64,000 nt of DNA, taken from Dimorphilus gyrociliatus. Lineage: Eukaryota; Animalia; Annelida. Each line of letters opens with the position of its first letter. Within the stretch, counting starts at the first letter, position 1. The notes below the pieces were generated by a model. It did no database searches, was not told the DNA's origin, and worked only from the letters and a program-made list of their open reading frames with translations. The stretch is taken from positions 1,612,968-1,676,967 of the forward strand of contig CAJFCJ010000009.1 of the NCBI GenBank assembly GCA_904063045.1, written 5' to 3'. Shown one piece after another: positions 11,241-41,615 of this stretch. A program made the translations under genes and the position numbers.

Positions 11241-11278
11241 ATATATATATACAGTATATATATATATATATATATATA
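11241..11278. repeat. (TA)n microsatellite interrupted by CAG
   Basis: Sequence is (AT)5-ACAG-(TA)12. Confidence 0.9.
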
Positions 11279-11501
11279 TTAACATACCAATAGGAGAAGA
11301 TATGTAAAGCCTGTACGATTAAACAATCTGTTTGAACGTTATAGTTTTGTATAAACATGTCTATATTGTGATGTTTTTAATACACATGTTTAGAATTCAA
11401 ATTCAAATGAAAAGTAATGGGTTGATTTATTGAAAATTTCCTCCATTGAATTGTATTATTAAAGAATATTGCAATTGAATAAGAGGCCTTTATCTATCTC
11501 T

Positions 11502-13811
11502 ATGAAACTTAATAATATTCCAAAGATAAAAAGTTCAATTGATTTAACTTCCGGCGAAGATAGTTCAGAAGAAATTATAGATTTATGGAATATGCGTATT
11601 AAATTTGGAAAGGAAACTAATCAAGTCGAAGAATTTTTACAAAATTTAGCGCAACATTCAAAATCTATTGTCGTTGGTATCAATCGGTTAAAAGAAAATT
11701 TTAATTCGCTAATTACATGCTACGAAGGTCCAAGTATGCTGAATAATACGTGTGATATGTATAACTCTGAAAACTTTCAAGTTGAGTCAACTTTAAAAGA
11801 AGATCTAAATCCATTATTTTCGAATTACAAGAACATTGTTGAACAGCTTGAAAACATCAATTTACAACGTAGTAACCTTCTTTGTGAATTAAGCCAATTT
11901 TTCTCAAAAGAGAGAGGTCTAAAAGAAGTGTCTTCTTATAGGCCAATTGATACAACCAATTTTACAATAAACTACATATCATTCAAGCAATGTTTACAAA
12001 AATTGTCAAACATTAGCTCTCATTTTGACTATCTTAAAGATCAACTCTATTTACAAACAACCGTAGATCTCGATAAAAGATTACATAACAAAAAAGACAA
12101 TAGTCCTAAGAAAAAAAATTGGGAATTACAGATTCAAGAAATGAAAGATATCATTGTCCGCATTCCACATAGTAAAGAGAACGATGAACTGCAAATGAAA
12201 TTAAATCAGATTGAAAAATTCCTAGTCGAAAACAATGAAATATTGAAAGGACAATTGTTAGAATTAGAATTTCTTAGAAAAATAGAAAGTAAACGGAACG
12301 AATTAAATAACGATTTGTTAGACGATAGAGACAATCAATTAAAGAATAAATTACTATTACTCAATACATCGAAATATCAAATTAAGACTTTAAATCGTCT
12401 AGTAATTAAATGGAAGAGACTATTCGATAAACGCAACGAGATTATCAGTTCATTATTAAAGGATAGAGAGGAACTTCTTAATCAAATTAAATTAAATAAT
12501 TTTATACCCGATTATTCAAAATTAAGCGAATTTAGAGAGTTAAAAGAATTATCTAATACAAAAGATGATTATTATCAACAATACTATACAAATAATTTAA
12601 TAGATAAGAGTAAAACAAACGAATTGGATAGATGTAGATATGAGAGGGATCGTTTAAGAAAGGAAATTGAAATTAGATTACCAATAACAAACGAAACTTT
12701 AGTACAATTAAGAAATATTATAAAGAAATTACATAATAGGCTCTCGTCCAAATCGAAGATGCTACTATCAAAAAGAAAAGCTAAAAAGAGATTAAGTCAA
12801 GCCGAAACTACTTTAATCGTTGATACACTAAAGAATTTAGAGAAATCTTGCAACATTCTCACTGATTCTAATACAACTCAACATCCCAAATTATCAGAGG
12901 ATAAAATAAGTACGAATACATTAAATAGTCCAACAAATGCAAATATTATTGAAGGTCATCAAATGACAAAAATACAAAGGTATTACGAAGAGAATTTTAG
13001 TAATGATATTGAAAAGAATACTGAGAATAACAGTTTTATTGAAATTCAATCAAAATTTCAATGTTTAAGAGAACATTTCGAAATTCTTTACGATTTAGTT
13101 GAAACTAATGATTTATTGGATAGCACTACACTTTTTACTTTTGAACAAGTTCGTGAACTACAAACCAGTTCCAATGTCATAAAATATCAAATAGACAAAG
13201 CCGAAGAAAAGAGAACAAGTTTTTTTGAGAATATATCGAAGGTCGTCGAAAAAGAGACGACAGGCCTATTCCCGCCCACAGAATTAGAATACTTACAGTC
13301 GCACGCTTTAACTTACTCTTTCGAATTAGTAAATTGTTTAACTAGTCTTATTTCTAATCAGAATAAAAGATTATTAATTCAAGAGAATTATATACAACTA
13401 CTTGAGAAACAAATATTAAAAGGGGAAAACAAAATAACTACTAGTTTAACAAGGCTTGATAAACCAGAATTAAAATGTATGGAACAAGATATAAAGCAGG
13501 ATACTCATACTTCAATAAACAGTCAGATGAGTACTAGACAGAGTAATAGACAGAGTAATAGACCGAGTTCCCAATGTTTTATAATGAATAAATCGGAGAT
13601 CATTAGCGAAACAATTGATACGTCATTTGAAAATTACAGCATTTATAATAAAATTAATAATGAAAAAAAGAAGGTCAAAAGACGCAAAAAAAGTACCAGT
13701 AAGAGGACGACGGAAACTATTAAACCATATAAAATGGGGACATTTTTAAAAAATAAGAAAGCCTATAAAAAATTTCGTAAAATTTCACTATTAAAAAAGA
13801 AATCTGTCTGA
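11502..13811 (+). CDS. Intronless coiled-coil protein (~770 aa) with a basic C-terminal tail; function unknown
   Basis: A 2.3-kb uninterrupted ORF in very AT-rich DNA, far longer than chance would give. First ATG is at 11502 (the ORF track starts at an upstream TTG). It has heptad-like L/E/K/N-rich helices and a tail KKKVKRRKKSTSKR...KKKSV*. Confidence 0.75.
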   Translation: MKLNNIPKIKSSIDLTSGEDSSEEIIDLWNMRIKFGKETNQVEEFLQNLAQHSKSIVVGINRLKENFNSLITCYEGPSMLNNTCDMYNSENFQVESTLKEDLNPLFSNYKNIVEQLENINLQRSNLLCELSQFFSKERGLKEVSSYRPIDTTNFTINYISFKQCLQKLSNISSHFDYLKDQLYLQTTVDLDKRLHNKKDNSPKKKNWELQIQEMKDIIVRIPHSKENDELQMKLNQIEKFLVENNEILKGQLLELEFLRKIESKRNELNNDLLDDRDNQLKNKLLLLNTSKYQIKTLNRLVIKWKRLFDKRNEIISSLLKDREELLNQIKLNNFIPDYSKLSEFRELKELSNTKDDYYQQYYTNNLIDKSKTNELDRCRYERDRLRKEIEIRLPITNETLVQLRNIIKKLHNRLSSKSKMLLSKRKAKKRLSQAETTLIVDTLKNLEKSCNILTDSNTTQHPKLSEDKISTNTLNSPTNANIIEGHQMTKIQRYYEENFSNDIEKNTENNSFIEIQSKFQCLREHFEILYDLVETNDLLDSTTLFTFEQVRELQTSSNVIKYQIDKAEEKRTSFFENISKVVEKETTGLFPPTELEYLQSHALTYSFELVNCLTSLISNQNKRLLIQENYIQLLEKQILKGENKITTSLTRLDKPELKCMEQDIKQDTHTSINSQMSTRQSNRQSNRPSSQCFIMNKSEIISETIDTSFENYSIYNKINNEKKKVKRRKKSTSKRTTETIKPYKMGTFLKNKKAYKKFRKISLLKKKSV

Positions 13812-16112: not shown

Positions 16113-16170
16113 CAAAAGTTGTCCAACCGGTCAGCAATCCTGCTTTTTCAAAACTTCGCGAAATTTCTCC
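16113..16170 (+). promoter_or_regulatory. Degenerate orphan copy of the 187-aa sHSP promoter, retaining a 3-unit HSE (TTCgcGAAatTTC, 16155-16167)
   Basis: Ungapped 48/58 identity, counted by eye, to 18042-18099. The CCAAT box is mutated to CCGGT and the downstream TATA is absent. Confidence 0.75.
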
Positions 16171-16479
16171 AAACACTCTCAAAAAATTTCGCTTCTTCCG
16201 ATTATGTGGCATTTAAGAAAATTTATAACCTTTAGGAAGATAACAAAAAACTCTAAAATTTCGATAAAATAAAAAAAAAATTCTACGAAACTTACAAATA
16301 CTAGATCACTGAAAAACCGAAAAGCAGAAGAAGTTATATTAAAAGTTCCATCAATTTATTTGTAATACATATTAAATACAATAAGTGAAAATATGCATTA
16401 AAACTTAAACACATTCATATAATAAAAACAAAAAAAACACAAATTTAAAGTTTAAAGAATTTTCCCCCATTCAAAAAGA

Positions 16480-17610
16480 TTATTCTACAATTTCGAAATC
16501 TTCATTCTTTTTACTCTCCGATTCATTCTCTTCTAATTCCTCATTCTTTCCTTTGTTGCCGAGGCTTTTTTCTTCTTTTTCAATCAATTTTTCATTTCTT
16601 TTCAAAGAGTCAACTTTATCATTATTTTCACCCTTTCTAGTTTCTGTATCCTTCGTGGTGATTATTAACATTTCATTGTCATCTAAAAGTGAGACAATAT
16701 CTTCCTCCTTAAGATCTACTGGCTTTGCGAAACGTCTCCATATTTTCTTTGAACATTTTATTCCATCTTCTTCAATAATAGCAGATCCAGTAACTTCAAT
16801 ACTATTACCTTTAACTTTAACACTTAAATCGTCAATATTAAAATGTTTCAAATCAATAGTTTTATAGAATGAAGGTTTTTTATCAACTTTCTCTTCTTCC
16901 TTCGAAACAATTTTGTCTATGACTTTTTCATCACTTTCATCTTTTGTTTCTACTTTTGAGCAATTTTCTTCATTACATTTTTCTTTTGAACAACAACGGC
17001 TTGTAGGCATTTCATTTGAATAGCATCCATCTTCAGATCCCTCTACAGATTTCTCATTAGAACATCTTTCTTTTTTATCAGTAATTCCGTCTTTTTCTTC
17101 AACAGTTTTTGTTGTAATCGTTAAAATTCCATCATCGTTTAATGATGATTGAATATCATTTGGTGAGATATTATCAGGTAGGTTGATTTGACGCCAAAAC
17201 TGTCTTCCATTATAAAATCCTTCTCCTTCTTTAGTTGATTTACCGAAAATTTCTACACTTCCGTTTATGACTCTAACTTTCAATTCTGATGGATGAAAAT
17301 CTTTCACATCAAAAGTATGATGAAAAGATTCCGCTTCCTTCTTTACAGTTTTGTCACACTTTTCTTTATCAAGTGTTGTACATTGCTGCTTTCCGCAACG
17401 TTTCACGTTTACTTTAGAAGAATTATTTGAGAAAGGAAAAACAAAACTACTTGGCGACCTTCTACAGAAACTTCTTCTCGAAAATGGAGGCAGATAATTG
17501 GTTGAACCAAGTATTGATACTAAATCTTCGTTGTCCAAAGAACAACCAAATGTAGGACCAAACCACGAATTTTGATTGTATGACTGATTAGGTGAAATAA
17601 AAATTGCCAT
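16480..17610 (-). CDS. Small heat-shock protein with two tandem alpha-crystallin domains (376 aa), copy A; intronless
   Basis: ACD1 SFHHTFDVKDFHPSELKVRVINGSVEIFGK...FWRQINLPDNISPNDIQSSLNDDGILTI; ACD2 SFYKTIDLKHFNIDDLSVKVKGNSIEVTG...IWRRFAKPVDLKEEDIVSLLDDNEMLII. HSE and TATA lie upstream. Confidence 0.9.
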   Translation of the reverse strand: MAIFISPNQSYNQNSWFGPTFGCSLDNEDLVSILGSTNYLPPFSRRSFCRRSPSSFVFPFSNNSSKVNVKRCGKQQCTTLDKEKCDKTVKKEAESFHHTFDVKDFHPSELKVRVINGSVEIFGKSTKEGEGFYNGRQFWRQINLPDNISPNDIQSSLNDDGILTITTKTVEEKDGITDKKERCSNEKSVEGSEDGCYSNEMPTSRCCSKEKCNEENCSKVETKDESDEKVIDKIVSKEEEKVDKKPSFYKTIDLKHFNIDDLSVKVKGNSIEVTGSAIIEEDGIKCSKKIWRRFAKPVDLKEEDIVSLLDDNEMLIITTKDTETRKGENNDKVDSLKRNEKLIEKEEKSLGNKGKNEELEENESESKKNEDFEIVE

Positions 17611-18208
17611 CTTCTTTGTAATTTCTTCTTTAAATTTCCAAAATTAATTTGTCGTTGTATCAAACTTCAAAAGTGTTGACTTTTCTCTTCTGAGTTTAGT
17701 CGAGTTATGATATTTGTCCAAAAATTTCTACCCTTTTTATATGAAACGAAGAGTTAAACGAGAATATTCTTCACATTTCTGGAAATTTCTCAACTTATCT
17801 AGAATACTATAGATGGCGCTCTTTGTGTTATGTGTTGTATTCTTAAGTTAACAAACATTGTTTTCTGATCAATATATCATTATTATTATCTCAATTGAAC
17901 TTCAAATCACAAAAATATAGTTTAAAATTGGAGTGGAAGATTTCAGATTTTATGAAACAGTCTATGGAATAATTGTAAACGTGATGCAAGTCACGTATAC
18001 TATTTACGTTACTATTTTCCATTTGATTACAACGAAACTTTCAAAAGTGTTCCAGCCAATCAGCAATCGTGTTTATTCGAAACTTCTCGAAATTTCTCCG
18101 ATCGACGTTACGACTATATAAACTCTTTCAATTTTCCGTTATTCATTCTCCTCTTCGGTAGCAACAACTACAGATCGAAGTTGAACACTCTTTGCATTCT
18201 CAACAACC
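17611..18208. promoter_or_regulatory. Bidirectional heat-shock promoter (left arm)
   Basis: For the leftward gene: TATA (reverse complement ATATAAAAAG, ~17733-17742) and in-register HSE units GAA17762, TTC17767, TTC17777, GAA17782, TTC17787. For the rightward gene: CCAAT 18056-18060, a perfect 4-unit HSE GAAacTTCtcGAAatTTC 18079-18096 and TATATAAA ~18115-18122. AGATGGCGCT is at 17811. Confidence 0.85.
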
Positions 18209-18772
18209 ATGTCCTTCAGACACTTGCCGGTTATGCGTCTTCCTAGTCCTTCTTGGGATCTTTGGCCATCTAGAAATGACGACTGGTTTCACAATCGTTG
18301 GTCGGACTGGATGACTAATATGCAAAGAACATTCGATGCTATGGACGAAGATTTTAGACAAATTAGCAGAGCTTTCGATAATCATATGGAACAAACTCAT
18401 AGAAGTGTTCTTGGTAGTCATACTGAAACTGATTTACCAGCTAATGTTGGATGGAAACTGGTCGACGATAAAGAAAAGAATCAGCGAAAACTGCATCTTG
18501 ATTTACCAGTGAAAAATTATGAACCTGAGGAAATCAAAGTTACAGTTGAAGGTGGAACTTTAACGATTAAAGCAACTCATCAACACGAAAAAGATGGAGA
18601 GAAAGTTTTTAGAGAGTGTGTTCGAAAGTTCACATTGCCAAAAGGGGTTAAAGAAGAAGATTTGAAATGTAATTTGAATGCCGACGGTCGTCTATCTGTC
18701 GAAGCCGTTGCTCCAGCTGCTATTTCGGATGGAGAGAAAGTAATACCAATCCAGTATGAAAAGTCAAAGTAA
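18209..18772 (+). CDS. Canonical small heat-shock protein (HSP20 / alpha-crystallin family, 187 aa), copy 1; intronless
   Basis: W/F/D-rich N-terminus; ACD LHLDLPVKNYEPEEIKVTVEGGTLTIKATH...RECVRKFTLPKGV...LKCNLNADGRLSVEA; C-terminal IXI motif (VIPIQ). Confidence 0.93.
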   Translation: MSFRHLPVMRLPSPSWDLWPSRNDDWFHNRWSDWMTNMQRTFDAMDEDFRQISRAFDNHMEQTHRSVLGSHTETDLPANVGWKLVDDKEKNQRKLHLDLPVKNYEPEEIKVTVEGGTLTIKATHQHEKDGEKVFRECVRKFTLPKGVKEEDLKCNLNADGRLSVEAVAPAAISDGEKVIPIQYEKSK

Positions 18773-19254
18773 ACGAAAACTTTCTTCATCAACTTGTCTC
18801 GTAGTTATTATTTCTATATAGATATTGTTCATTGATTAAACTATTAACCTTTAGTTAGAAAACTCACCATAGATTTGTGTATGTTATCTTTTCTACTCCA
18901 TAAAATATTAAGAAAGTGTTTGTATAAAAGTTTCTTTAAAAGTATTGAGATATTTACGAAAGATTTTCAGTAAACGATAAGTTTCGAAATTAATGTGGTG
19001 TCTTTCCTATTATGTATAATCATTGCCTGCCTCAGCAATAAAAACATTTTCATATTCGTATGAAAGGTCAATGTAATAATTTTTTCTTCGGTTCTACTAG
19101 ATATTCACAATGTTTGAAATGTGATAAGTAAACTGCTTAAACACTTGATTATTTTCTGAATATGTTTATATTTAAAATCAAAAGATAGTTAATAAATCTC
19201 TCGATAGGTTGTGGAATTATAAGGACGTAACCAATACCTGAATACCTGTATACC

Positions 19255-20747
19255 TCAGTAGATATAAGGAAATATCTTGTAGGGTACTATTTCGCAGTAC
19301 TTATCCCAGTCGCTGCCATATTTTTTCCGACAATTCTTTTCATCTCTTTCGAATCGACTTATTAAGAGACCAAGAAAATATATTGGATAAAAGTAAGCTA
19401 TTAAGCAAGTTCCGGATGGAAGAGACCAAGATAAACTCATTAAGAGGTCTCCCATGTAATTAGGGTGGCGAGAAATTCCCCAAAATCCTGATACTAATAA
19501 TTTTTTACCAGATTTTGTAGTCATAGTTTTTAAATCTATGAGATAGGAGATGATAAAACATCCGTTAAATTATATTTTACGCAAGGTACTTACGAGCTAT
19601 TGACGGGTCGTTTGGGTTTGTTCTAAATTTGTTTTTCTGATTGTTCGAACCTCTAAAAATTGCAAAACCAACTAGAAAAGCAGCAAGGAAGAGGATCATG
19701 GCAAATATATTCCAATGTTGTGGATGTTCTAATAAATAGCGTGCTTGTAAAGTGTAAAGAAATGGTACCCAGCATAAGTCACCAAAGCTGAGCATGTAGC
19801 CGAAACCTTCATCGGTAATATCCATTGTAGACAATATTGCTGGCTAAAAATATTTTTCACACTTTATTGTACAATCAATTTTTTGAAGTTACCTCATTAA
19901 CAAGAGCATCTATGACATAGATACTATGTCCTAATATAACAAAAGCAAGAGACCAAGTAAATGTACCTCTTTCAAAACTTAGAAAGAGAAAAGACAAATT
20001 TAGAATAAGCCATCCAATTAAACCTGGCCTTAATTCGCATACAAATTTTAAATCAATTTCAAAAATACGAGGGTTAAGCTCCCTACCCATCCAGAAGTTG
20101 AAAATCTCTGAATTTGTGTTGCCATGTTCAGCAAGATACTTTTCATTTACTTGAAAAGATTTAACAAAAAGAAAAATACTGAAAAAAGTAACAAGTATTT
20201 TATATTAATATATAAATATGCTTTAAATTAATGATTTATTTTAATATTCTAAAATTTTCAAACCTTAGTAGGGCACTTAAGACAAAAGCTGCAAATGCTA
20301 ACTGATTGAAATGTTCATGAATCCATTTAAATGATCCTCCACTTATCCAATACAGTAAAAATATTACTAAACTAACAGCTAAGGCATATAGCGAATTGCA
20401 ACGATACTCTAGCTGTTTATTATTTAGTTGTTTTATAGGTAAACCTTTATGTATTGCACCTATTGGAAGTTTAGAAACTATCAAGTGTAAAATGAACCAA
20501 GAAAATACAATTTTAAACGCATTTCCATCGATTAAGGAATACAATGAAGGAATTGTAACTTTCTCAAAAATAGAACATTTATCCTGTTAATATTTAAGAT
20601 AAGTTATATTTCAGACTTTTGCAAAACAAAAAATACCGGATTGCATGTTAGATTAAGATAAAATACAGCGAGAGGCAAACCAAGAACCAATACACAAGCT
20701 CCTAATGTTCCCCCAAACTCAGTTGGTCTCTTACGTTCTGACACCAT
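19255..20747 (-). CDS. TM7SF2: Delta(14)-sterol reductase (ERG24 / TM7SF2 / LBR C-terminal family), multi-exon
   Basis: [16 protein letters not shown] start at 20747; GRELNPRI; [10 protein letters not shown]; [26 protein letters not shown]; [12 protein letters not shown]; [18 protein letters not shown]; [25 protein letters not shown]. There is no Tudor/RS N-terminus, so it is TM7SF2-like rather than full-length LBR. Confidence 0.9.
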
Positions 20748-21428
20748 ATTTCTCAACTGTCTGACAAAAAATATATCGTTCGATTTACCGAACTATGAAC
20801 CTCAGACAGAAATGTCGTCTGCAAAAAACAACTAGCTATTTCCAACGCCATCTGGAGAAATATGTGTAGACTAATAATTTCAAAAATACTCAATCTTAAT
20901 ATTTTAAAATTAATTCTCTCAAAGCTCGTACTTTTCTCTTTCTCGCGATGTAGAAGTGATGTCTCTTTAAACAAGGCAATAGAAAAATTTCGAATAAAAT
21001 GTTCAATACATTTTCTTAAAAATATCTTAAAATGTTAAATGAAAAAAGACAATGCGTTACTGTCGAATAAGTGTTGGACTGCCGAAGAAAGCAACAACTG
21101 CATCAAACCATTATTTTTAAATATATCGATTAAATTTTTACTAAATATAAACATCATACCACAATAAAAAATTTCCAAAGGAAACATTTATCTCCTTAAT
21201 GAAAAATCTTAAAACTCACAAAAACGAAATATTTAATTAGTTTTCCTTTATTTTAAAAGCTTCAAAGCAAGAAAGGCAAATCCAAAATACATCAAATATT
21301 TAAATATTATCAATAAACACAAAAAGAATAAGTGAAAATATAGGATAAAAACTTAAACACATTCATATAATAAAAACAAAAAAAAACACAAATTTAAAGT
21401 TTAAAGAATTTTCCCCCATTCAAAAAGA

Positions 21429-22559
21429 TTATTCTACAATTTCGAAATCTTCATTCTTTTTACTCTCCGATTCATTCTCTTCTAATTCCTCATTCTTTCC
21501 TTTGTTGCCGAGGCTTTTTTCTTCTTTTTCAATCAATTTTTCATTTCTTTTCAAAGAGTCAACTTTATCATTATTTTCACCCTTTCTAGTTTCTGTATCC
21601 TTCGTGGTGATTATTAACATTTCATTGTCATCTAAAAGTGAGACAATATCTTCCTCCTTAAGATCTACTGGCTTTGCGAAACGTCTCCATATTTTCTTTG
21701 AACATTTTATTCCATCTTCTTCAATAATAGCAGATCCAGTAACTTCAATACTATTACCTTTAACTTTAACACTTAAATCGTCAATATTAAAATGTTTCAA
21801 ATCAATAGTTTTATAGAATGAAGGTTTTTTATCAACTTTCTCTTCTTCCTTCGAAACAATTTTGTCTATGACTTTTTCATCACTTTCATCTTTTGTTTCT
21901 ACTTTTGAGCAATTTTCTTCATTACATTTTTCTTTTGAACAACAACGGCTTGTAGGCATTTCATTTGAATAGCATCCATCTTCAGATCCCTCTACAGATT
22001 TCTCATTAGAACATCTTTCTTTTTTATCAGTAATTCCGTCTTTTTCTTCAACAGTTTTTGTTGTAATCGTTAAAATTCCATCATCGTTTAATGATGATTG
22101 AATATCATTTGGTGAGATATTATCAGGTAGGTTGATTTGACGCCAAAACTGTCTTCCATTATAAAATCCTTCTCCTTCTTTAGTTGATTTACCGAAAATT
22201 TCTACACTTCCGTTTATGACTCTAACTTTCAATTCTGATGGATGAAAATCTTTCACATCAAAAGTATGATGAAAAGATTCCGCTTCCTTCTTTACAGTTT
22301 TGTCACACTTTTCTTTATCAAGTGTTGTACATTGCTGCTTTCCGCAACGTTTCACGTTTACTTTAGAAGAATTATTTGAGAAAGGAAAAACAAAACTACT
22401 TGGCGACCTTCTACAGAAACTTCTTCTCGAAAATGGAGGCAGATAATTGGTTGAACCAAGTATTGATACTAAATCTTCATCATCCAAAGAACAACCAAAT
22501 GTAGGACCAAACCACGAATTTTGATTGTATGTCTGATTAGGTGAAATAAAAATTGCCAT
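21429..22559 (-). CDS. Tandem alpha-crystallin-domain sHSP (376 aa), copy B
   Basis: Translation is identical to copies A and C except S10T and N27D. Confidence 0.9.
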   Translation of the reverse strand: MAIFISPNQTYNQNSWFGPTFGCSLDDEDLVSILGSTNYLPPFSRRSFCRRSPSSFVFPFSNNSSKVNVKRCGKQQCTTLDKEKCDKTVKKEAESFHHTFDVKDFHPSELKVRVINGSVEIFGKSTKEGEGFYNGRQFWRQINLPDNISPNDIQSSLNDDGILTITTKTVEEKDGITDKKERCSNEKSVEGSEDGCYSNEMPTSRCCSKEKCNEENCSKVETKDESDEKVIDKIVSKEEEKVDKKPSFYKTIDLKHFNIDDLSVKVKGNSIEVTGSAIIEEDGIKCSKKIWRRFAKPVDLKEEDIVSLLDDNEMLIITTKDTETRKGENNDKVDSLKRNEKLIEKEEKSLGNKGKNEELEENESESKKNEDFEIVE

Positions 22560-22824
22560 CTTTGTAATTTCTTCTTTAAATTTCCAAAATTAATTTGTCG
22601 TTGTATCAAACTTCAAAAGTGTTGACTTTTCTCTTCTGAGTTTAGTCGAGTTATGATTTTGGTCCAAAAATTTCTACACTTTTTATATGAAACGAAGAGT
22701 CATACGAGAAAATTCTTCACATTTCTGGAAATTTCTCAACTTATCTAGAATAATATAGATGGCGCTTTTTGTGTTATTTGTTGTATTCGTAAGTTAAAAA
22801 ACATTGTATTTCTGATCAATATAT
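22560..22824 (-). promoter_or_regulatory. Diverged heat-shock promoter of copy B
   Basis: HSE units GAA22708, TTC22713, TTC22723, GAA22728, TTC22733, the TATA (~22681-22688) and AGATGGCGCT (22757-22766) are all retained while neighbouring bases differ from copies A and C. Confidence 0.8.
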
Positions 22825-22954
22825 ATTTTTTAAACGTTATAACAACGTAAAATTTGACGGCGTAGTTGAGGCGATAGTATTTGTTTTTTTAATTTAGAAA
22901 ACCGAGTTCAAATAACGGGAAAGTTTCATTTATGAAAATAATATAATATAAAAG

Positions 22955-23700
22955 AATGACAGAATGTGGAAAATGTTCTAGATCTTCTAGAAAATGCTAC
23001 TAATGATGATTATTCACTTGTTACATCAGAAATAGTGCGAAATTTACGGAAAATAGATTGTTTTTATGTTCCTTCATGAAGAAATATGTGCAAAAGAGTG
23101 CATTGAGTGTGAAGCTATCCGGAAAGGTTGAAAATCTGATGCTAATATGTTTTTCTGTAAATGTAAAAGGATGTGAGTGTTTAGTTAGAGAGAAAAATTT
23201 AGAACACAAGACTGGATAGAATCCATATTAATTAGATGTTATTTAAAGTAATCCAGCAGTGAATTACTTAGTAAAAATCAAAGAGTCACATATCTGCAAT
23301 TTGCAAAGTGTCAAGCACTTCGACATTTTGGTCATGCTACATATCATAATTGTTTTCTTGAAGATGGAAGTATGCAAATATCACATATTGACATGTCGAC
23401 CAACAGCATTAAATACTCCTCTAAATGTAGGAATACTTAAAGTAGAGAATACAAAATGGAGACCGATAATAGAAACTTTAATTCCCATTAACCTGGTTAT
23501 CTTTACTATTCAAAAGATAGACTTATTAAATACACACTACATAACTGGACCAACCCTCATGAAACAAAAGCGCCATACTTGTATTGACGGCTTGAGGGTG
23601 TCCAACACTAATCTTTTAATAAAAATTTTACAACAATCTATAAAAATAAAGAAAGCTTAGAAGAAAATTCAATCAAATGCGAAGCCATCAACTGATTGAC
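22955..23700 (+). pseudogene. Possible decayed coding fragment in the palindrome loop
   Basis: Protein-like frames broken by frameshifts and stops: ENVLDLLENATNDDYSLVTSEIVRNLRKI / VFMFLHEEICAKECIECEAIRKG*KSDANMFFCKCK / RVTYLQFAKCQALRHFGHATYHNCFLEDG. Family not recognised. Confidence 0.2.
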
Positions 23701-24235
23701 TATTTTACTTCAGTTTTAATAAAATTGTCCTCGTTATATGCAAATCTAACTACTACTTTTCATATCAAATGCGTACAAAGTATACGAGATGAATTCTTTG
23801 AATAAAAAAGAAAGCTTTCAAATTAAGATGTACATTTGAATTTTTAAAAAAATGCTCTGCTAACATAGATAACTTTTGCAAAGACGCCTTCCTTTTTAAT
23901 GAAAGATCAATTGAAACGCATTTCGTTTTTTGACGTTTTTATCACGTTTTGACAACGGAAAACTTTTATTCAAAACCCAAAGCTATGATTATACATAATA
24001 AGAAAGACACCACATTAATTTCGAAACTTATCGTTTACTGAAAATCTTTCGTAAATATCTCAATACTTTTAAAGAAACTTTTATACAAACACTTTCTTAA
24101 TATTTTATGGAGTAGAAAAGATAACATACACAAATCTATGGTGAGTTTTCTAACTAAAGGTTAATAGTTTAATCAATGAACAATATCTATATAGAAATAA
24201 TAACTACGAGACAAGTTGATGAAGAAAGTTTTCGT

Positions 24236-24799
24236 TTACTTTGACTTTTCATACTGGATTGGTATTACTTTCTCTCCATCCGAAATAGCAGCTGGAGCAA
24301 CGGCTTCGACAGATAGACGACCGTCGGCATTCAAATTACATTTCAAATCTTCTTCTTTAACCCCTTTTGGCAATGTGAACTTTCGAACACACTCTCTAAA
24401 AACTTTCTCTCCATCTTTTTCGTGTTGATGAGTTGCTTTAATCGTTAAAGTTCCACCTTCAACTGTAACTTTGATTTCCTCAGGTTCATAATTTTTCACT
24501 GGTAAATCAAGATGCAGTTTTCGCTGATTCTTTTCTTTATCGTCGACCAGTTTCCATCCAACATTAGCTGGTAAATCAGTTTCAGTATGACTACCAAGAA
24601 CACTTCTATGAGTTTGTTCCATATGATTATCGAAAGCTCTGCTAATTTGTCTAAAATCTTCGTCCATAGCATCGAATGTTCTTTGCATATTAGTCATCCA
24701 GTCCGACCAACGATTGTGAAACCAGTCGTCATTTCTAGATGGCCAAAGATCCCAAGAAGGACTAGGAAGACGCATAACCGGCAAGTGTCTGAAGGACAT
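24236..24799 (-). CDS. Canonical sHSP (187 aa), copy 2
   Basis: Translation is identical to 18209-18772. Confidence 0.93.
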   Translation of the reverse strand: MSFRHLPVMRLPSPSWDLWPSRNDDWFHNRWSDWMTNMQRTFDAMDEDFRQISRAFDNHMEQTHRSVLGSHTETDLPANVGWKLVDDKEKNQRKLHLDLPVKNYEPEEIKVTVEGGTLTIKATHQHEKDGEKVFRECVRKFTLPKGVKEEDLKCNLNADGRLSVEAVAPAAISDGEKVIPIQYEKSK

Positions 24800-25397
24800 G
24801 GTTGTTGAGAATGCAAAGAGTGTTCAACTTCGATCTGTAGTTGTTGCTACCGAAGAGGAGAATGAATAACGGAAAATTGAAAGAGTTTATATAGTCGTAA
24901 CGTCGATCGGAGAAATTTCGAGAAGTTTCGAATAAACACGATTGCTGATTGGCTGGAACACTTTTGAAAGTTTCGTTGTAATCAAATGGAAAATAGTAAC
25001 GTAAATAGTATACGTGACTTGCATCACGTTTACAATTATTCCATAGACTGTTTCATAAAATCTGAAATCTTCCACTCCAATTTTAAACTATATTTTTGTG
25101 ATTTGAAGTTCAATTGAGATAATAATAATGATATATTGATCAGAAAACAATGTTTGTTAACTTAAGAATACAACACATAACACAAAGAGCGCCATCTATA
25201 GTATTCTAGATAAGTTGAGAAATTTCCAGAAATGTGAAGAATATTCTCGTTTAACTCTTCGTTTCATATAAAAAGGGTAGAAATTTTTGGACAAATATCA
25301 TAACTCGACTAAACTCAGAAGAGAAAAGTCAACACTTTTGAAGTTTGATACAACGACAAATTAATTTTGGAAATTTAAAGAAGAAATTACAAAGAAG
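24800..25397. promoter_or_regulatory. Bidirectional heat-shock promoter (right arm)
   Basis: Mirror image of 17611-18208; HSE GAA24912, TTC24917, GAA24922, TTC24927; AGCGCCATCT at 25188-25197. Confidence 0.85.
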
Positions 25398-26528
25398 ATG
25401 GCAATTTTTATTTCACCTAATCAGTCATACAATCAAAATTCGTGGTTTGGTCCTACATTTGGTTGTTCTTTGGACAACGAAGATTTAGTATCAATACTTG
25501 GTTCAACCAATTATCTGCCTCCATTTTCGAGAAGAAGTTTCTGTAGAAGGTCGCCAAGTAGTTTTGTTTTTCCTTTCTCAAATAATTCTTCTAAAGTAAA
25601 CGTGAAACGTTGCGGAAAGCAGCAATGTACAACACTTGATAAAGAAAAGTGTGACAAAACTGTAAAGAAGGAAGCGGAATCTTTTCATCATACTTTTGAT
25701 GTGAAAGATTTTCATCCATCAGAATTGAAAGTTAGAGTCATAAACGGAAGTGTAGAAATTTTCGGTAAATCAACTAAAGAAGGAGAAGGATTTTATAATG
25801 GAAGACAGTTTTGGCGTCAAATCAACCTACCTGATAATATCTCACCAAATGATATTCAATCATCATTAAACGATGATGGAATTTTAACGATTACAACAAA
25901 AACTGTTGAAGAAAAAGACGGAATTACTGATAAAAAAGAAAGATGTTCTAATGAGAAATCTGTAGAGGGATCTGAAGATGGATGCTATTCAAATGAAATG
26001 CCTACAAGCCGTTGTTGTTCAAAAGAAAAATGTAATGAAGAAAATTGCTCAAAAGTAGAAACAAAAGATGAAAGTGATGAAAAAGTCATAGACAAAATTG
26101 TTTCGAAGGAAGAAGAGAAAGTTGATAAAAAACCTTCATTCTATAAAACTATTGATTTGAAACATTTTAATATTGACGATTTAAGTGTTAAAGTTAAAGG
26201 TAATAGTATTGAAGTTACTGGATCTGCTATTATTGAAGAAGATGGAATAAAATGTTCAAAGAAAATATGGAGACGTTTCGCAAAGCCAGTAGATCTTAAG
26301 GAGGAAGATATTGTCTCACTTTTAGATGACAATGAAATGTTAATAATCACCACGAAGGATACAGAAACTAGAAAGGGTGAAAATAATGATAAAGTTGACT
26401 CTTTGAAAAGAAATGAAAAATTGATTGAAAAAGAAGAAAAAAGCCTCGGCAACAAAGGAAAGAATGAGGAATTAGAAGAGAATGAATCGGAGAGTAAAAA
26501 GAATGAAGATTTCGAAATTGTAGAATAA
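25398..26528 (+). CDS. Tandem alpha-crystallin-domain sHSP (376 aa), copy C
   Basis: Translation is identical to copy A; AATAAA at 26687-26692. Confidence 0.9.
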   Translation: MAIFISPNQSYNQNSWFGPTFGCSLDNEDLVSILGSTNYLPPFSRRSFCRRSPSSFVFPFSNNSSKVNVKRCGKQQCTTLDKEKCDKTVKKEAESFHHTFDVKDFHPSELKVRVINGSVEIFGKSTKEGEGFYNGRQFWRQINLPDNISPNDIQSSLNDDGILTITTKTVEEKDGITDKKERCSNEKSVEGSEDGCYSNEMPTSRCCSKEKCNEENCSKVETKDESDEKVIDKIVSKEEEKVDKKPSFYKTIDLKHFNIDDLSVKVKGNSIEVTGSAIIEEDGIKCSKKIWRRFAKPVDLKEEDIVSLLDDNEMLIITTKDTETRKGENNDKVDSLKRNEKLIEKEEKSLGNKGKNEELEENESESKKNEDFEIVE

Positions 26529-27949
26529 TCTTTTTGAATGGGGGAAAATTCTTTAAACTTTAAATTTGTGTTTTTTTTTGTTTTTATTATATGAATGTGT
26601 TTAAGTTTTTATCCTATATTTTCACTTATTCTTTTTGTGTTGATTGATAATATTTAAAACACTTATTGTATTCAATATCTATTACAAATAAATTGATGGA
26701 ACTTTTAATATAACTTCTTCTGCTTTTCGGTTTTTCAGTGGTCTAGTATTTGTAAGTTTCGTAGAATTGGACTCTTTTATTCGGAGGTAGAGCTTTAACG
26801 AAATTCGAGAGTTTTTTGTTATCTTCCCAAAGGTTAAAAGTTTTTTCAAGTGACAAAACAGTAAAGAAAGCAAAGTATTTTTAAAATCGTGATTTTGTCT
26901 TATAGCATTTACTATTTTTAAACGAGCGCCTTTGTGCTTGGCAGAAAAGGAGGGTTTTTTTAACAGATGATTGAAAAAGTATTATTTTATTGGTGAAAGT
27001 GATGTAAGGAAATCTGTTTTTTTATTTAGGTCACTGTAACATAAATTCAAGATAATTTATCAATGGTTTTGAGCATAGAAATTCTAACTTGTATGGACAA
27101 GCATTGATTTTATACTAGTCTGTGTAATTTATCGACGGATTAGCTAATGCTAAGGTAGTAATAAATCATTTTATGAAGTCGTTAAAAGAGATGAAATATA
27201 AAAGAGTATGGCAAGAAGTTAGAATAGTTTCTCTGAAATGATTGCTCTTTATGTAATCACTAAGCATATCGATTTTCAATTATATTCTCAAAATTGCACA
27301 ACATATTGAATTGACGATGAGAAGAATTGTTTGTGTTTTTTCTTTTATTTTCCTTAATAATGCTAGCGAAATAGAGGTCATGTTTATTTGAATTTCTCGA
27401 ACAATGGATATCTTAAAAAATCTGAAGTATAATAAACATAGATTGAGTACTACGATATGTCTTATATACGCGAAGTTGTCTTTGTTTGTAGAGTTAAGAT
27501 TTAAGCGTATGCTTTGTTAATGTTTAAAAATCTACATATAATATTTTAGTAATTGTAAGGATGATAATTAATATGGCAAGAGAAGGGTTTAATTTGTTAA
27601 TCAAAGTAATTAGTTTCGTAATATTTGCTGAATATCAAATAAAATCTTCATATTTTGTATAATGTTCGCATTTTCACTAGTCTCGTAAATATGTCTATGA
27701 CATTTTGTACGCTAGATAAATCTTTCTTCTACTTCTCAGTAATTCTATTAACCTTTTCATTTATAAGATTAGTTCTTTTCAAGGTTAAGTAAGGGTATAA
27801 ATTTGACAAGGAAAAGTTTTTTTTTAAGTACAGTATTCTTTTTTTTTAAATGATTTGGTTAGTTGTATTGTGCAATGGTCCTTCAGAAACAATATAAATA
27901 AAGAAATTGATGGAGTAAAATGGAAATATATAATATAAATTGCGTTAAT

Positions 27950-29427: not shown

Positions 29428-30118
29428 GCCTTTTTTATCAATATCGGAGTATGTCAATCAAATTAAGTAACACGTCTCCGTTATTTTGTCGATCTTCAAA
29501 AACAGAACACTTTCTAATATATAATATGGCGTTAGTTGTCAAGACGACGAATTACTTTATTCACACTTTAGATGGCGCTATAACTTGTTATCGAAAATTT
29601 GTTAGATAAGGAAAGTTCTGGATGCCGGATAATAACCAGCAATAGAGGCAATAAAAAATCTAACTTTTTTTAAAGTAGAGAGTGTATCGTCTTTTATTTT
29701 CAAGTTTGCGACTGTTTTTAGTTTGCAAATCTAGAACAGAACTCATTGTAGATAAAACTATCCAAAAGTAAATGTATTTTTTTATGCGTGATTGTGTTGA
29801 TGTTGGCACGAAACAACATTACCCTGGATTGATCAAGCACTGTAGATTAACCAATAACCACTTTTGAAGAACATTGATTTGCAACAACAAGATGGCGCTG
29901 TACTTTATAAGCCTCATGAATATTCACGAACCATTTCACGAGTTGGTGGAAAGTAAACAATTCGCCGTAAGTTGGAGCTCGTATCCCATCTTTTTTAAAA
30001 TGGCGGGTAAAGTGTGATAGAAGCCGTTTCGGGAAAAACTTTTTAATATATTACTGATTTCCAACTCTCATCAACTGTTTCTCATGCTTACGTTTATTTT
30101 GGAAGTTCTGTCTATGAA
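29428..30118. promoter_or_regulatory. Shared intergenic region of the head-to-head CATIP / USP24 pair
   Basis: 691 bp between divergent ATGs, with AGATGGCGCT at 29570 and 29890 and a YY1-like AAAATGGCGG at 29997-30006. Confidence 0.6.
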
Positions 30119-33100
30119 ATGAATTGTGTGTTAGAGGAAAATGTCCGGCAGCTGCTTGACATGGGCTTTCCATGTGAAAGTTCTATACGAGAAGCTCTTA
30201 AAAAAGCTCATAATGATTTAAATCAAGCTGTCATGATTCTAACTGGAGAAGATTTGATACCAATGGACGATGTCGAAATCCAGGAAGTACAGAAAAACTC
30301 GGAACATGACGCTTTTCCATTAAACACTCTTCCCTCGCCTCCACCGTCCTACGACGATGTTGTTCCTGACGGCGTGCAGGTTTTTATTAAAATAATATAA
30401 TAAATACGTCTTTTGTGCAAGTTTCTCTTTTACTGCGACAGTATATCGACGAGCAAGATCCAACTGCAAACATCTTAATAGAAAATAGTGACCCGGAAGC
30501 CGAAGTTTTTCCAGCTACGCATCTTTATGAATTGGAAGGAAGGGTATTTACTGAACAGTGGAATATTCCGTATAAAAAAGATGAATCCTTGGCAAAATGT
30601 TTACTTGCATCGACAAGATTTGCTCAAAACAGTTAGCTTTTGATAAATTTTTCTTTTCTCAAAAGTATAATTTCTTCTTTTTATTTAAATAGATCACTTG
30701 GAAATTGATGAAAATTGTGAAAGATTTGTTAGTCGTGTAATGATGGAGAGTTTTGATAAGGTAATTCACTAAATACAACTTATTATTAACTTAGCTTAAT
30801 TTATAAAAATCAAAATTTTTTTAGCTATTGTATTGTAATGCTGTTAGAAAATGGAGTTTAGAAACGCAAATTGGTGTGTATAATATGTGTACATTCTTCA
30901 TTGATCTCGCAACAGCAAGATTACAACACCCCAACTTAAATACATCTATTATGTCGACTTTAGCGAAAGTAAGATTTTTCTTTATTTTTTTTAAATTTAA
31001 TTTTAATTGGCTAATGAAATATTTTATTTTATTCAAAAATAAAAATAGGTTTTAGATCAAAATTGTGAATTTCACTTGAAAAATAAGACAATTGATGATT
31101 GTCATTTAAAAAATGAGAATAAGAAATACGAAGAACTCTTTAGTAAACAACCGTTCGCACTTTTTCAAGTAAGATCATTTTCTATCCTTAATATTTATGT
31201 GTTAATTTTTAATTAATATAATTTATATAGTATAAATCTTGTGATGGCTGGCCAAATCGGACATGTGAAGATTTTCTAATGTTATCAAATTTGATAAACC
31301 GAGTAAGTTATTATTTATATTTAAATTGTAAACACTAAAATAATTGGTTTTAATTTTTATACATTAATTAGTTTGGTAAGCAAGAAGGATTTCAAAATAT
31401 GTTAGAACATATGCGGTCCGAAGATTTAGATATTTTAGTAAGTTTACTTTTCAACTCGAAGCTAATTTTTAAATTAATAATTAATTTGTATCATATTTTT
31501 ATAATTTCTTCATTTCTTTTTATAGCATATGGAACTTCTACTTGCACCTTTAGCTAAATGCTGTCAAAAATTAAACTTGAACGTAGTTAAACCTATTGTT
31601 AAAGAAGCGATGGAAAGGGTACAAGCTTTACTTGCAAGTTTAACTAATGAACATTTGAAAGAAAAGGTGATTATTTTATTGAAGATAGTTTTTTATAGAA
31701 TAATGAATTTTTTTTTACTATTCCATAGGGCATAAATGTTGCTTTTCAATGCCTTGAAAGTTGCAAAATATTAGCTACACGATTTTACCCTGGTAAAGAA
31801 GACGAAGTTGATAATACTCGCTTAAGACTTGTGCTAAGAATGCTCAAGTCCGTTCATTTTAATGCCAAAATGAATGCTTTAAGAGAGGTTTGTATTAATT
31901 AACATTACTTTTCCAAGTTTCCACTTAATTATAATATATCTATATATATATTGAATTTTTTAACAGTTAACAAAGCTTATTCAAGAAAACATTAGTTCTG
32001 AAACACATATGACCAGTATACCACCAAACAAAATAAAAATATGGCTGGTTGATAATAAAGTTCTTAGCTTAGCCTTTGAAGGAAATATCGACCAATTACA
32101 ATATTGTGAAAAAATGAAAGCTGTTATTGAATTTTTAGGAAATTCTCTAACAGATCAAGAACTAACTAGAATCTGGGATTTACAACAAGGCAGAAGCGGA
32201 TATATTATTGACAACATCCATCATTTAATAGCTGCTGCTGCAGTAAATTTTACTCCTGACCTAATGGAACATTTACGAAAGCTAATAAATAAGGTATGCA
32301 CTCTTTTTTTTGAAAAGCGAGTTTTATTTAAATTTATTGTAACAGAGCTGGATTCATGAAAAGGAGAGAATGAGAGAGAAAATTTTGAATCTCGTTGGCG
32401 CCATTGGGCGAGAAACTAAAGTAGAAAGTACAAAGGCTATGATATTAGATTTATTATGGCAATGGGCTCATCTACCGAAAATAGCTAATCATTTAGTTGA
32501 AAGAGCAGCTTCTTTACATTGTCAAATCCTTAGCGATCATCACACGAGGCAAAAGCTTAAATCTAATTACATTCATAAGTGTTTGGAGGATGTGAAACGA
32601 GTAAGTACTCTAAAATGTGTTTAATTTTGTCTTTTCAACTGTTTTTGTTATTATTTTCAAAGGGCGAGTGGGTCTATCCAGCTCTTCGTCAAATCCTTCA
32701 CATAGCAGAGAGTATGGTTAAACTTACAAGAATTGAGAAGGTAATATCATATTTTTTATTGCCGTTCAATTAGAAAACTTTAACAGTTTCTTTCTGTTTC
32801 TTTTATAGGGCTTAATCAATGAATACAAGAATGGAGACATTTTAAAGATTATCTGTAATAGTCTCATCAAATTTCATGCAAAGTCAACTGAAAATTCATT
32901 AAGTTTAAATGAGAATACTTTAGTAGATGGTCGATACGAACATCGTTTGGTTAGTATTTATAAACAGATTAACTGACTACAATTTGACGACATTTTGCCT
33001 TTAATAGTATGTTACCTCTCACTTGAAATTGTTAAATTTCATCTTGGAAGAAGGAAAAATGTATTTACCTTTTGATAGAGCAAAGGATATTTGGCGTTGT

Positions 33101-41020: not shown

Positions 41021-41574
41021 GTAACGTATTAAATTCTCAGGAAATTTTGGCTCCTGTTTTGTTTTTATGTATAAAGATAAAATAACTACTATTAATCACT
41101 ACAACAACCTTAAAACAAACTACAGCTACTTCTACTCACTGTTTTTTTACGTTCTATGCATAAAAAGGATTGCTTCTTTTCGTGAAACATTTCGTCAACT
41201 ACTCTGTATTTATATACGCTTGTAAATAAGTTTGCAATATGCATATTATATATATATTTATATATATATAGTATGTATAGGTGTATATGTGTATATAAAT
41301 ATGGTTTTTAGGTCAATTTCCTTTTCACTTTTGTGAATATTTGCTTTTTGTTAAACCTTAATATTCAAGAAAAACAAGAAAAATCAACCCAAAAAAAAAA
41401 CAACTTGAAACTGAACTGCATACTTGTAAAATAATGTTTTACCGGTTTTTTTTAATATTAAAATAATTATTAATGATTATTAATATGAAATTATGAAATA
41501 AGCTGTGTAAAGTTATTTTTTTTTTTTTAAAAAAAAGATTAAAATGGTAATTTGCTTTCCTTGATATATAAGAA

Positions 41575-41582
41575 TATATACA

Positions 41583-41615
<33 letters not shown>
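41575..41615. repeat. (TA)n microsatellite preceded by TACAG, in the USP24/TTBK 3' region
   Basis: TATATA-CAG-(TA)16. Confidence 0.9.

Follow-up and report, generated by a model that had tools for sequence, protein, structure and literature searches.

A mirrored divergent sHSP gene pair in the annelid Dimorphilus gyrociliatus, probably homogenised by gene conversion

The inverted hsp70 pair at 87A of Drosophila is near-identical through conversion between its copies. Closer in layout to the locus reported here is hsp-16.1/hsp-16.48 of Caenorhabditis elegans (Russnak & Candido 1985; re-analysed in PMC1803023 and PMC3966223), a divergent sHSP pair with HSE promoters that also exists as an inverted duplicate. 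Its two arms do not differ in either coding or intergenic DNA, and gene conversion has been proposed as the cause (PMC1803023, PMC3966223). In the same nematode, the inverted heat-inducible chaperone genes F44E5.4 and F44E5.5 of the hsp70 family are near-identical through conversion (PMC1803023). The palindromes of the human and ape Y chromosome have arms more than 99.9% identical by intrachromosomal conversion, and inversion of their spacer is possible (Rozen et al. 2003, as cited in PMC1803023). Two-domain ('dimeric') sHSPs have already been described in annelids and other Spiralia (de la Fuente & Novo 2022, PMC9075518; Eisenia fetida, PMC13226371); a term search of these two papers found no mention of Dimorphilus, of an inverted arrangement or of gene conversion.

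The window analysed here is a stretch of 64,000 nucleotides from Dimorphilus gyrociliatus, a tiny marine annelid worm (contig CAJFCJ010000009.1, positions 1,612,968 to 1,676,967). It harbors a two-gene sHSP module that is present twice, as a left arm (L) and a right arm (R) in mirror image. In our judgement this is probably a genuine inverted duplication of a heat-shock module, the interiors of which were homogenised by conversion.

Gene content and promoters of the locus

The features of the locus are collected in Table 1. A preliminary description had placed the inverted arms at 16226-19024 and 23986-26838; the arms are real, and exact alignment refined their limits to 16218-19026 and 26844-23982. 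Each arm carries one gene for a 376-aa and one for a 187-aa protein. The 376-aa protein has two HSP20/alpha-crystallin domains (residues 89-174 and 243-329, approximately) and matches PF00011 in two stretches with 78.5 bits, against a cut-off of 20.8 bits that each domain exceeded separately in a genome scan. The 187-aa protein scores 50.2 bits and its gene is also intronless. By these matches both genes encode sHSPs, and the 376-aa protein is of the two-domain ('dimeric') spiralian type. Two-domain paralogues are found elsewhere in the genome (C6, C32, C5 and C28). A word search with the whole 376-aa protein and with residues 1-180 gave, apart from the query, only a weak mantis-shrimp match. 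An exact-match look-up with the 187-aa protein gave no entry.

The loop between the arms measures 4,955 bp. As had been claimed, it is gene-bearing: it holds the multi-exon ERG4/ERG24 gene and, in addition, a third, partial copy of the module (M), made up of the 376-aa gene and a separate HSE promoter. The locus thus has the 376-aa gene three times and the 187-aa gene twice. Copy M is direct with respect to L and inverted with respect to R, and differs from both at 4 of the first 81 CDS bases, with the protein changes S10T and N27D. Neither an Rfam scan nor a tRNA scan gave a match in the window.

Table 1. Features of the Dimorphilus gyrociliatus sHSP locus, in window positions
Feature	Position	Strand	Basis or remark
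Left arm (L) of the inverted repeat	16218-19026		alignment: 99.8% to 26630-23982 over 2,649 columns
Site of 37-bp deletion in L	16380-16381		37 bp retained in R (26667-26631)
L core with zero differences from R (R 26577-24002)	16431-19006		2,576 bp, alignment and permutation
376-aa sHSP gene, copy L, intronless	16480-17610	-	ORF; PF00011 E 4.7e-22, 2 stretches
Divergent promoter of L, 598 bp	17611-18208		motif search
Elements of the L 376-aa gene	HSE 17777-17789; TATA ~17735	-	motif search
Elements of the L 187-aa gene	CCAAT 18056; four-unit HSE 18079-18096; TATA 18115		motif search
187-aa sHSP gene, copy L, one alpha-crystallin domain	18209-18772	+	ORF; PF00011 E 3e-13
ERG4/ERG24-family sterol reductase gene, at least 5 exons, convergent with L 187-aa gene	19255-20756	-	profile match
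Third copy (M) of 376-aa gene unit: 3' UTR, CDS and ~270 bp of promoter	21291-22832		self-alignment
376-aa sHSP gene, copy M	21429-22559	-	ORF
HSE of copy M	22723-22735		motif search
Spacer, unique, no recognisable gene, single-copy in genome	22833-23981		genome search
Right arm (R) of the inverted repeat	23982-26844		alignment of arms
187-aa sHSP gene, copy R	24236-24799	-	ORF
Divergent promoter of R	24800-25397		HSEs 24912-24929 and 25219-25231
376-aa sHSP gene, copy R	25398-26528	+	ORF

An HSE promoter had been proposed to lie between the divergent genes, and HSE arrays were indeed found in the promoters of both arms. In L, the four-unit HSE precedes the TATA of the 187-aa gene by 19 bp and a gap of about 35 bp separates the three-unit HSE from the minus-strand TATA, so that at least three alternating nGAAn/nTTCn units stand close upstream of TATA, the arrangement used to recognise HSF genes. 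Across the window the three-unit pattern has 9 matches, compared with about 1.4-1.6 expected. CCAAT, HSE and TATA are kept in one relative (L025) despite coding DNA that is only 73% identical. From these promoter motifs, both genes of each arm are predicted to be HSF-induced under heat or proteotoxic stress.

Contigs of relatives bear on the age of the module. One, from L025, has a 184-aa sHSP gene convergent with ERG4/ERG24. That of a second relative has a head-to-head pair of 376 aa and 185 aa, the former an HSP20 protein and the latter the orthologue of the 187-aa protein, followed by a cut minus-strand ORF at the place expected for ERG4/ERG24. Since the relatives keep the gene pair, the ERG4/ERG24 neighbour or both, the module is old. 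Coding DNA of the relatives is about 71-73% identical, and non-coding DNA can be aligned only at a few promoter motifs. No second arm was seen in contigs of two relatives that cross the point of the inner arm edge, which is weak evidence, the contigs being short with one copy visible. The ends of the L025 contig were considered as repeat boundaries, as its first base is 338 bp before the ATG and the homology of M ends at 328 bp. This was rejected: a contig from a second sample, encoding the same protein, reaches 701 bp upstream, and the ends reflect coverage.

Identity among the three copies

The core shared by L and R shows no difference over 2,576 bp (2,583 bp with an alternative placement of a 1-bp indel within an A-run). 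It includes the 598-bp promoter, part of each 3' UTR and, in all, about 880 bp of non-coding DNA. Every synonymous site of the 1,695 coding bases is identical. The preliminary description had reported identical arm proteins, matching promoter and 3' sequence, and decay at the arm ends with a 37-bp indel. All of this holds in the exact arm alignment: both proteins are identical between L and R, the match of non-coding DNA runs through the whole core, and the core is not as diverged as its margins (0 differences in 2,576 bp versus 5-7%).

The outer stretch of L beyond the 99.8% block, out to 16218, is 86% identical to R. The outer 213 bp contain 14 substitutions and 5 indels, the 37-bp indel among them, with identity of about 97% over 16279-16380 and about 85% over 16218-16278. 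The outer edge of the L core is marked by 1-bp indels at 16430 and 16395 and by substitutions at 16396 and 16399; at the inner edge there are substitutions at 19007 and 19024, and homology ends at 19026/23982. In R, the 37-bp segment is flanked by an 8-bp direct repeat (AATAAGTG). Most of the segment is also present in M, where it is clear from 21299, its first 8 or so bases being a poor match.

Comparison with M revealed a mosaic. Over 16381-16430, M equals R and not L, the two sharing five states against L, most of the 37-bp segment included. All three copies are identical over 16431-17529 (1,099 bp). Over 17530-17881, L equals R and not M; these 352 bp, next to the 1,099-bp identical run, hold 17 substitutions and 2 indels between M and L (about 5%). 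Divergence of the margins amounts to about 6.6% for L-R and about 4.8% for M. For L-R, with 21 difference events in 2,809 aligned bases, the longest identical run in 200,000 random permutations was 1,528 bp, short of the 2,576 bp observed. With 200,000 permutations for each pair, the observed run was not reached for M-L or M-R either. Divergence is significantly uneven by permutation, and the three-way mosaic is the kind of trace that gene conversion leaves.

Probable gene conversion and alternative explanations

A zero-difference core beside margins diverged by 5-7% cannot be produced by a single duplication that evolves at one rate. Together with the independent three-copy mosaic, this supports the earlier proposal of an older duplication homogenised by conversion over that of a recent copy. 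At least two gene-conversion tracts would best explain the L/M/R mosaic. The duplication, or duplications, would date back far enough for edges that escaped conversion to have diverged by about 5-7%, and the interiors of the copies would later have been made identical by non-reciprocal recombination. Two past events would suffice, an R-M tract (at least 1,178 bp) and an L-R tract (at least 2,576 bp); the edges would have been spared because a tract needs homology on both sides. Tracts of at least 1.2 kb and 2.6 kb look to us long for single conversion events, and overlapping multiple events or a double crossover would leave the same pattern. The outcome may be a higher, matched dosage of two stress chaperones with the same sequence across copies. 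Crossing-over is possible between any two copies: between L and R it would invert the 5-kb loop, between M and R it would invert about 2.3 kb, and between L and M it would delete or duplicate the 187-aa gene and the ERG4/ERG24 gene.

The locus could also derive from a single recent complex duplication, for example by replication template switching, in which R and M were copied from L. The cores would then be young and the margins would hold errors of low-fidelity synthesis, with no conversion. The diverged tracts do sit at the edges of the duplicated segments in both comparisons, the 37-bp indel carries an 8-bp microhomology signature, and the similar divergence of the L-R and M margins fits one origin. 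However, the clusters usual at such junctions are far sparser than those observed here, where 213 bp hold 14 substitutions and 5 indels and 352 bp hold 17 and 2. Furthermore, M agrees with R at five states in which L differs, although it is L that holds the ancestral position by ERG4/ERG24. Independent copying errors would not be shared by M and R, so the mosaic still needs transfer between copies, and we regard a conversion-free origin of this kind as improbable. Strong purifying selection alone, acting on old copies without any exchange, was also considered: the coding sequence and the HSE promoters are functional and constrained, and promoter motifs are kept across species. But identity extends to all synonymous sites and to the non-coding bases of the core, while between species the promoter keeps short motifs only and coding DNA is 73% identical. 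With zero synonymous and non-coding differences, selection as sole cause was rejected, and we give it next to no probability.

Copy number and exact identity rest on one published consensus (PacBio RS II, Quiver, Pilon, HaploMerger2). A mis-joined haplotype, a fold-back chimera or repeats equalised by short-read polishing therefore has to be weighed: there is a single assembly, Pilon was used with short-insert Illumina reads, HaploMerger2 was applied, and spurious palindromes are known from other assemblies. Against this, the arms have different unique outer flanks, enclose a 5-kb gene-holding loop and lie within a contig (1.63 Mb into 2.69 Mb), whereas the fold-back type gives loop-less palindromes at contig ends. 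The genome search found unique genes on both flanks, a single-copy spacer and right flank, and, in the 77.9-Mb assembly, neither other copies of the locus nor a spare haplotig of it. The reads came from a PacBio library of 20 kb with size selection at 5 kb, and many of them would therefore be expected to exceed one 2.8-kb arm. Finally, differences at 16396, 16399, 17530-17533 and 19007 survive directly beside identical tracts, which argues against a general loss of differences through polishing. We consider an assembly artefact unlikely and assign it a very low probability. A transposable-element origin was rejected, the spacer and right flank being single-copy and a sensitive self-BLAST empty. 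No further sHSP or hsp70 genes in inverted pairs were found by the genome scan; in D. gyrociliatus the two hsp70 genes of the pair stand in direct tandem.

Significance and comparison with known systems

In its broadest form, our reading would make the palindromic layout a recurrent, selected arrangement of heat-shock genes at which nematodes and annelids arrived separately. Conversion between arms would then keep the sequence and dosage of the two- and one-domain partners in step, and populations would vary in the orientation of the ERG4/ERG24 loop and in L-M copy number. This is speculative and, to us, rather unlikely. Knowledge of sHSPs or of gene conversion in general is unchanged by the Dimorphilus locus. 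Its interest is as a compact 10.6-kb system in which conversion can be studied for repeats of either orientation, inverted or direct, in a small spiralian that can be cultured inbred. Because L, M and R have different 3' UTRs, RNA-seq should be able to tell the expression of the copies apart.

The 376-aa protein resembles the dimeric sHSPs of annelids in having two tandem alpha-crystallin domains and a variable linker. The locus shares with the Y palindromes inverted arms around a unique spacer and, probably, arm-to-arm conversion, but the latter span tens of kb to Mb and carry testis genes, whereas the Dimorphilus locus is of kb scale, carries stress genes and has no known sex linkage. In Drosophila 87A and in F44E5.4/F44E5.5 two copies of one gene face each other, whereas in Dimorphilus a two-gene module is mirrored.

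The likening to C. elegans hsp-16 made in the preliminary description is apt. In both, a divergent sHSP pair is repeated in inverted arms on either side of a unique spacer, identity runs through non-coding DNA, and conversion has been proposed for the nematode (PMC1803023, PMC3966223). The Dimorphilus arms are longer (2.8 kb versus 1.9 kb), and the spacer is 4,955 bp with ERG4/ERG24 and a third sHSP copy, compared with 414-416 bp of unique DNA in C. elegans. Unlike in hsp-16, one partner is a two-domain sHSP. The two loci belong to different phyla and different sHSP lineages, which points to separate origins; the earlier term 'independently evolved' is reasonable, given spiralian-type sHSPs and, as a weak indication, the relatives' contigs without a second arm. 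The locus would thus be a second clean case, in another phylum, of the classic hsp-16 layout, a mirrored divergent sHSP pair kept identical. It goes beyond the nematode locus in its diverged, preserved margins and its three-copy mosaic, which together map conversion tracts to within a few bases.

Inverted arms, loop and third copy

Self-BLAST of the window and an inverted-repeat search placed the left arm (L) at 16218-19026 and the right arm (R) at 26844-23982, refining the preliminary description, whose coordinates (16226-19024 and 23986-26838) were correct. Each arm carries two divergently transcribed, intronless ORFs for small heat-shock proteins (sHSPs), one of 376 aa with two HSP20/alpha-crystallin domains (approximately aa 89-174 and 243-329) and one of 187 aa with a single such domain. 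Base-by-base alignment of the arms found no difference over 16431-19006 (2,576 bp, or 2,583 bp under an alternative placement of a 1-bp indel in an A-run). The identical proteins, the decay of identity at the arm ends and the 37-bp indel described earlier were all recovered; on the outer side identity is lost stepwise, and on the loop side homology ends sharply at 19026/23982; in both arms the polyadenylation signal AATAAAA follows within a few bases. An 8-bp direct repeat, AATAAGTG, bounds the 37-bp segment in R, so L probably lost it by microhomology-mediated deletion.

The loop between the arms (4,955 bp) contains a sterol reductase gene, a spacer of 1,149 bp, which occurs once in the genome and has no recognisable gene, and M, a third copy of the 376-aa gene unit, with its own heat-shock element (HSE, at 22723) and TATA box. 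The preliminary description of the palindrome makes no mention of M. No additional copies were found anywhere in the genome.

Features of the sHSP palindrome and differences between its arms (window positions)
Feature	Position	Strand or orientation	Remark
L-R outer differences	16218-16278		9 substitutions and 2 indels; alignment breaks down beyond
L-R outer differences	16279-16380		3 substitutions
L-R outer difference	16380		37-bp indel
L-R outer differences	16395, 16430		1-bp indels
L-R outer differences	16396, 16399		substitutions
L-R loop-side differences	19007, 19024		substitutions
ATG, 376-aa gene, copy L	17610	opposite to 187-aa gene
TATA box, 376-aa gene	~17735	opposite to 187-aa gene
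HSE, 376-aa gene promoter	17777-17789	opposite to 187-aa gene	three units
CCAAT box, 187-aa gene promoter	18056
HSE, 187-aa gene promoter	18079-18096		perfect, four units
TATA box, 187-aa gene	18115
ATG, 187-aa gene, copy L	18209
ERG4/ERG24-family sterol reductase gene	19255-20756	minus	multi-exon; in loop
M, third copy of 376-aa gene unit	21291-22832	direct to L, inverted to R	in loop

Three-way mosaic and probable gene conversion

Three-way alignment gave a mosaic. In L 16381-16430, where two substitutions and two 1-bp indels separate L from R, M has the R state at each of them, and M shares most of R's 37-bp segment (clearly from M 21299; over the first ~8 bases the match is poor). The next 1,099 bp (16431-17529) are the same in L, M and R and comprise codons 28-376 together with the beginning of the 3' UTR. 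From 17530 to 17881 L and R still agree, and M is set apart from both by 17 substitutions and 2 indels (~4.8%). Four of these substitutions lie within the first 81 bases of the coding sequence and produce S10T and N27D.

In 200,000 permutations that redistributed the observed difference events at random over each pairwise alignment, no identical run was as long as the real one for L-R (2,576 of 2,809 aligned bp; longest permuted run 1,528 bp), M-L (1,099 of 1,501 bp; longest 783 bp) or M-R (1,178 of 1,530 bp). Selection was rejected as the cause, because the identical tracts include all synonymous sites and ~880 bp of non-coding DNA. The mosaic and the permutation test thus support the earlier reading of a palindrome homogenised by gene conversion. 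Two non-reciprocal transfers would suffice. The R-M transfer would have covered 1,178 bp or more and the L-R transfer 2,576 bp or more, and a series of overlapping transfers would leave the same pattern. Divergence of the unconverted edges (small counts) is similar, ~6.6% at the L-R outer margin and ~4.8% at the 5' end of M, consistent with copies that may be of similar age. Loop inversion and ongoing homogenisation are predictions for this locus.

The assembly (77.9 Mb in 349 contigs; published as ~78 Mb in ~350 scaffolds) was built with PacBio RS II reads, PBcR, Quiver, Pilon and HaploMerger2 (PMC7854359). Neither a fold-back chimera nor a mis-joined haplotype nor polishing that made the copies alike fits the locus, since the palindrome lies 1.63 Mb inside a 2.69-Mb contig, between unique flanking genes (PRMT3-like on the left, CATIP/RIIa-like on the right), its arms enclose a unique gene-bearing loop, and single-base differences persist right beside identical tracts. 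The palindrome is thus unlikely to be an assembly artefact, with a small residual doubt.

Promoters and other sHSP genes

Two separate heat-shock promoters occupy the 598-bp intergenic region; by eye, extra GAA/TTC units adjoin the HSE at 17777-17789. The three-unit HSE pattern has 9 matches in the window against ~1.5 expected, and five of the window's seven arrays sit in sHSP promoters. We infer that the sHSP genes of the arms are heat-induced. A near-palindromic motif (AAACGTGA...GTCACGT) lies 5' of the CCAAT box at ~17979-17996 and is kept at ~120-137 of L025, a contig from a relative (Logan run SRR23372231); it might act as an additional regulatory site in the 187-aa gene promoters of both species. 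Directly outside L, and ~400 bp 5' of the PRMT3-like gene, a 58-nt element (16113-16170) is 83% identical to the CCAAT-to-HSE core of the 187-aa gene promoter, with an apparently degraded CCAAT; its positions 16155-16167 form a three-unit HSE. Nothing comparable lies outside R. The element may be left over from an older partial duplication, or it may be a heat-shock enhancer that was borrowed.

Elsewhere in the window there is a three-unit HSE (29918-29930) ~190 bp upstream of a plus-strand UBA-domain ORF (30119-30400), and a plus-strand, intronless, Lys/Asn/Glu-rich ORF of 780 aa (11469-13811) without a Pfam match. The only self-match besides the sHSP copies is an exact 35-bp direct repeat (11245-11279 and 41574-41608, 30 kb apart).

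The mirrored arrangement occurs only at this locus in the genome (G000), and other sHSP genes are dispersed. Contig C6 harbors a 311-aa paralogue (G000:C6:4358792-4359652; L023 7787-8722) that has two alpha-crystallin domains, and an HSE lies ~135 bp 5' of the ATG; contigs C32, C5 and C28 carry more candidate two-domain genes. The 187-aa gene has a 216-aa paralogue (49% identity) on contig C7, where the 10 kb inspected contained no perfect three-unit HSE. Two HSP70 genes (G000:C6:1016958-1023897) lie ~5 kb apart in direct tandem, each broken into two ORFs in a six-frame scan.

Relatives and known palindromes

For the 187-aa protein, a word search gave two orthologues (72-73% identity; 81% to each other) in Logan assemblies of relatives. 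In L025 a 184-aa gene and an ERG4/ERG24 gene converge, matching exactly the arrangement at L's inner junction. The CCAAT, HSE and TATA elements of the promoter are kept, with coding DNA only 71-73% identical. A 3.1-kb contig of ERR14224706 has a 376-aa HSP20 gene head-to-head with a 185-aa gene, and next to this pair a minus-strand ORF that is cut. Thus the two-gene module and its ERG4/ERG24 neighbour, seen as two pieces on different contigs, look older than the split from both relatives. Both contigs continue unbroken past the position matching the inner edge of the arm, a weak hint that these relatives are without an identical second arm.

Homogenisation likewise occurs in inverted hsp70 pairs of Drosophila and C. 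elegans and in Y-chromosome palindromes. Among known systems the C. elegans hsp-16.1/hsp-16.48 locus comes closest: a divergent sHSP pair is duplicated there as a perfect inverted repeat with a spacer of ~415 bp, and suspicion of gene conversion goes back a long way (Russnak & Candido 1985, as described in PMC1803023 and PMC3966223). Two-domain sHSPs are already reported as common among annelids (PMC9075518, PMC13226371). The D. gyrociliatus locus is a neat example that would not surprise a specialist, and it could be used as a small model of inter-repeat conversion. It differs from the known palindromes in its phylum, in a module combining a two-domain with a one-domain gene, in its large, gene-bearing loop, and in the third copy M, whose mosaic maps the tracts.
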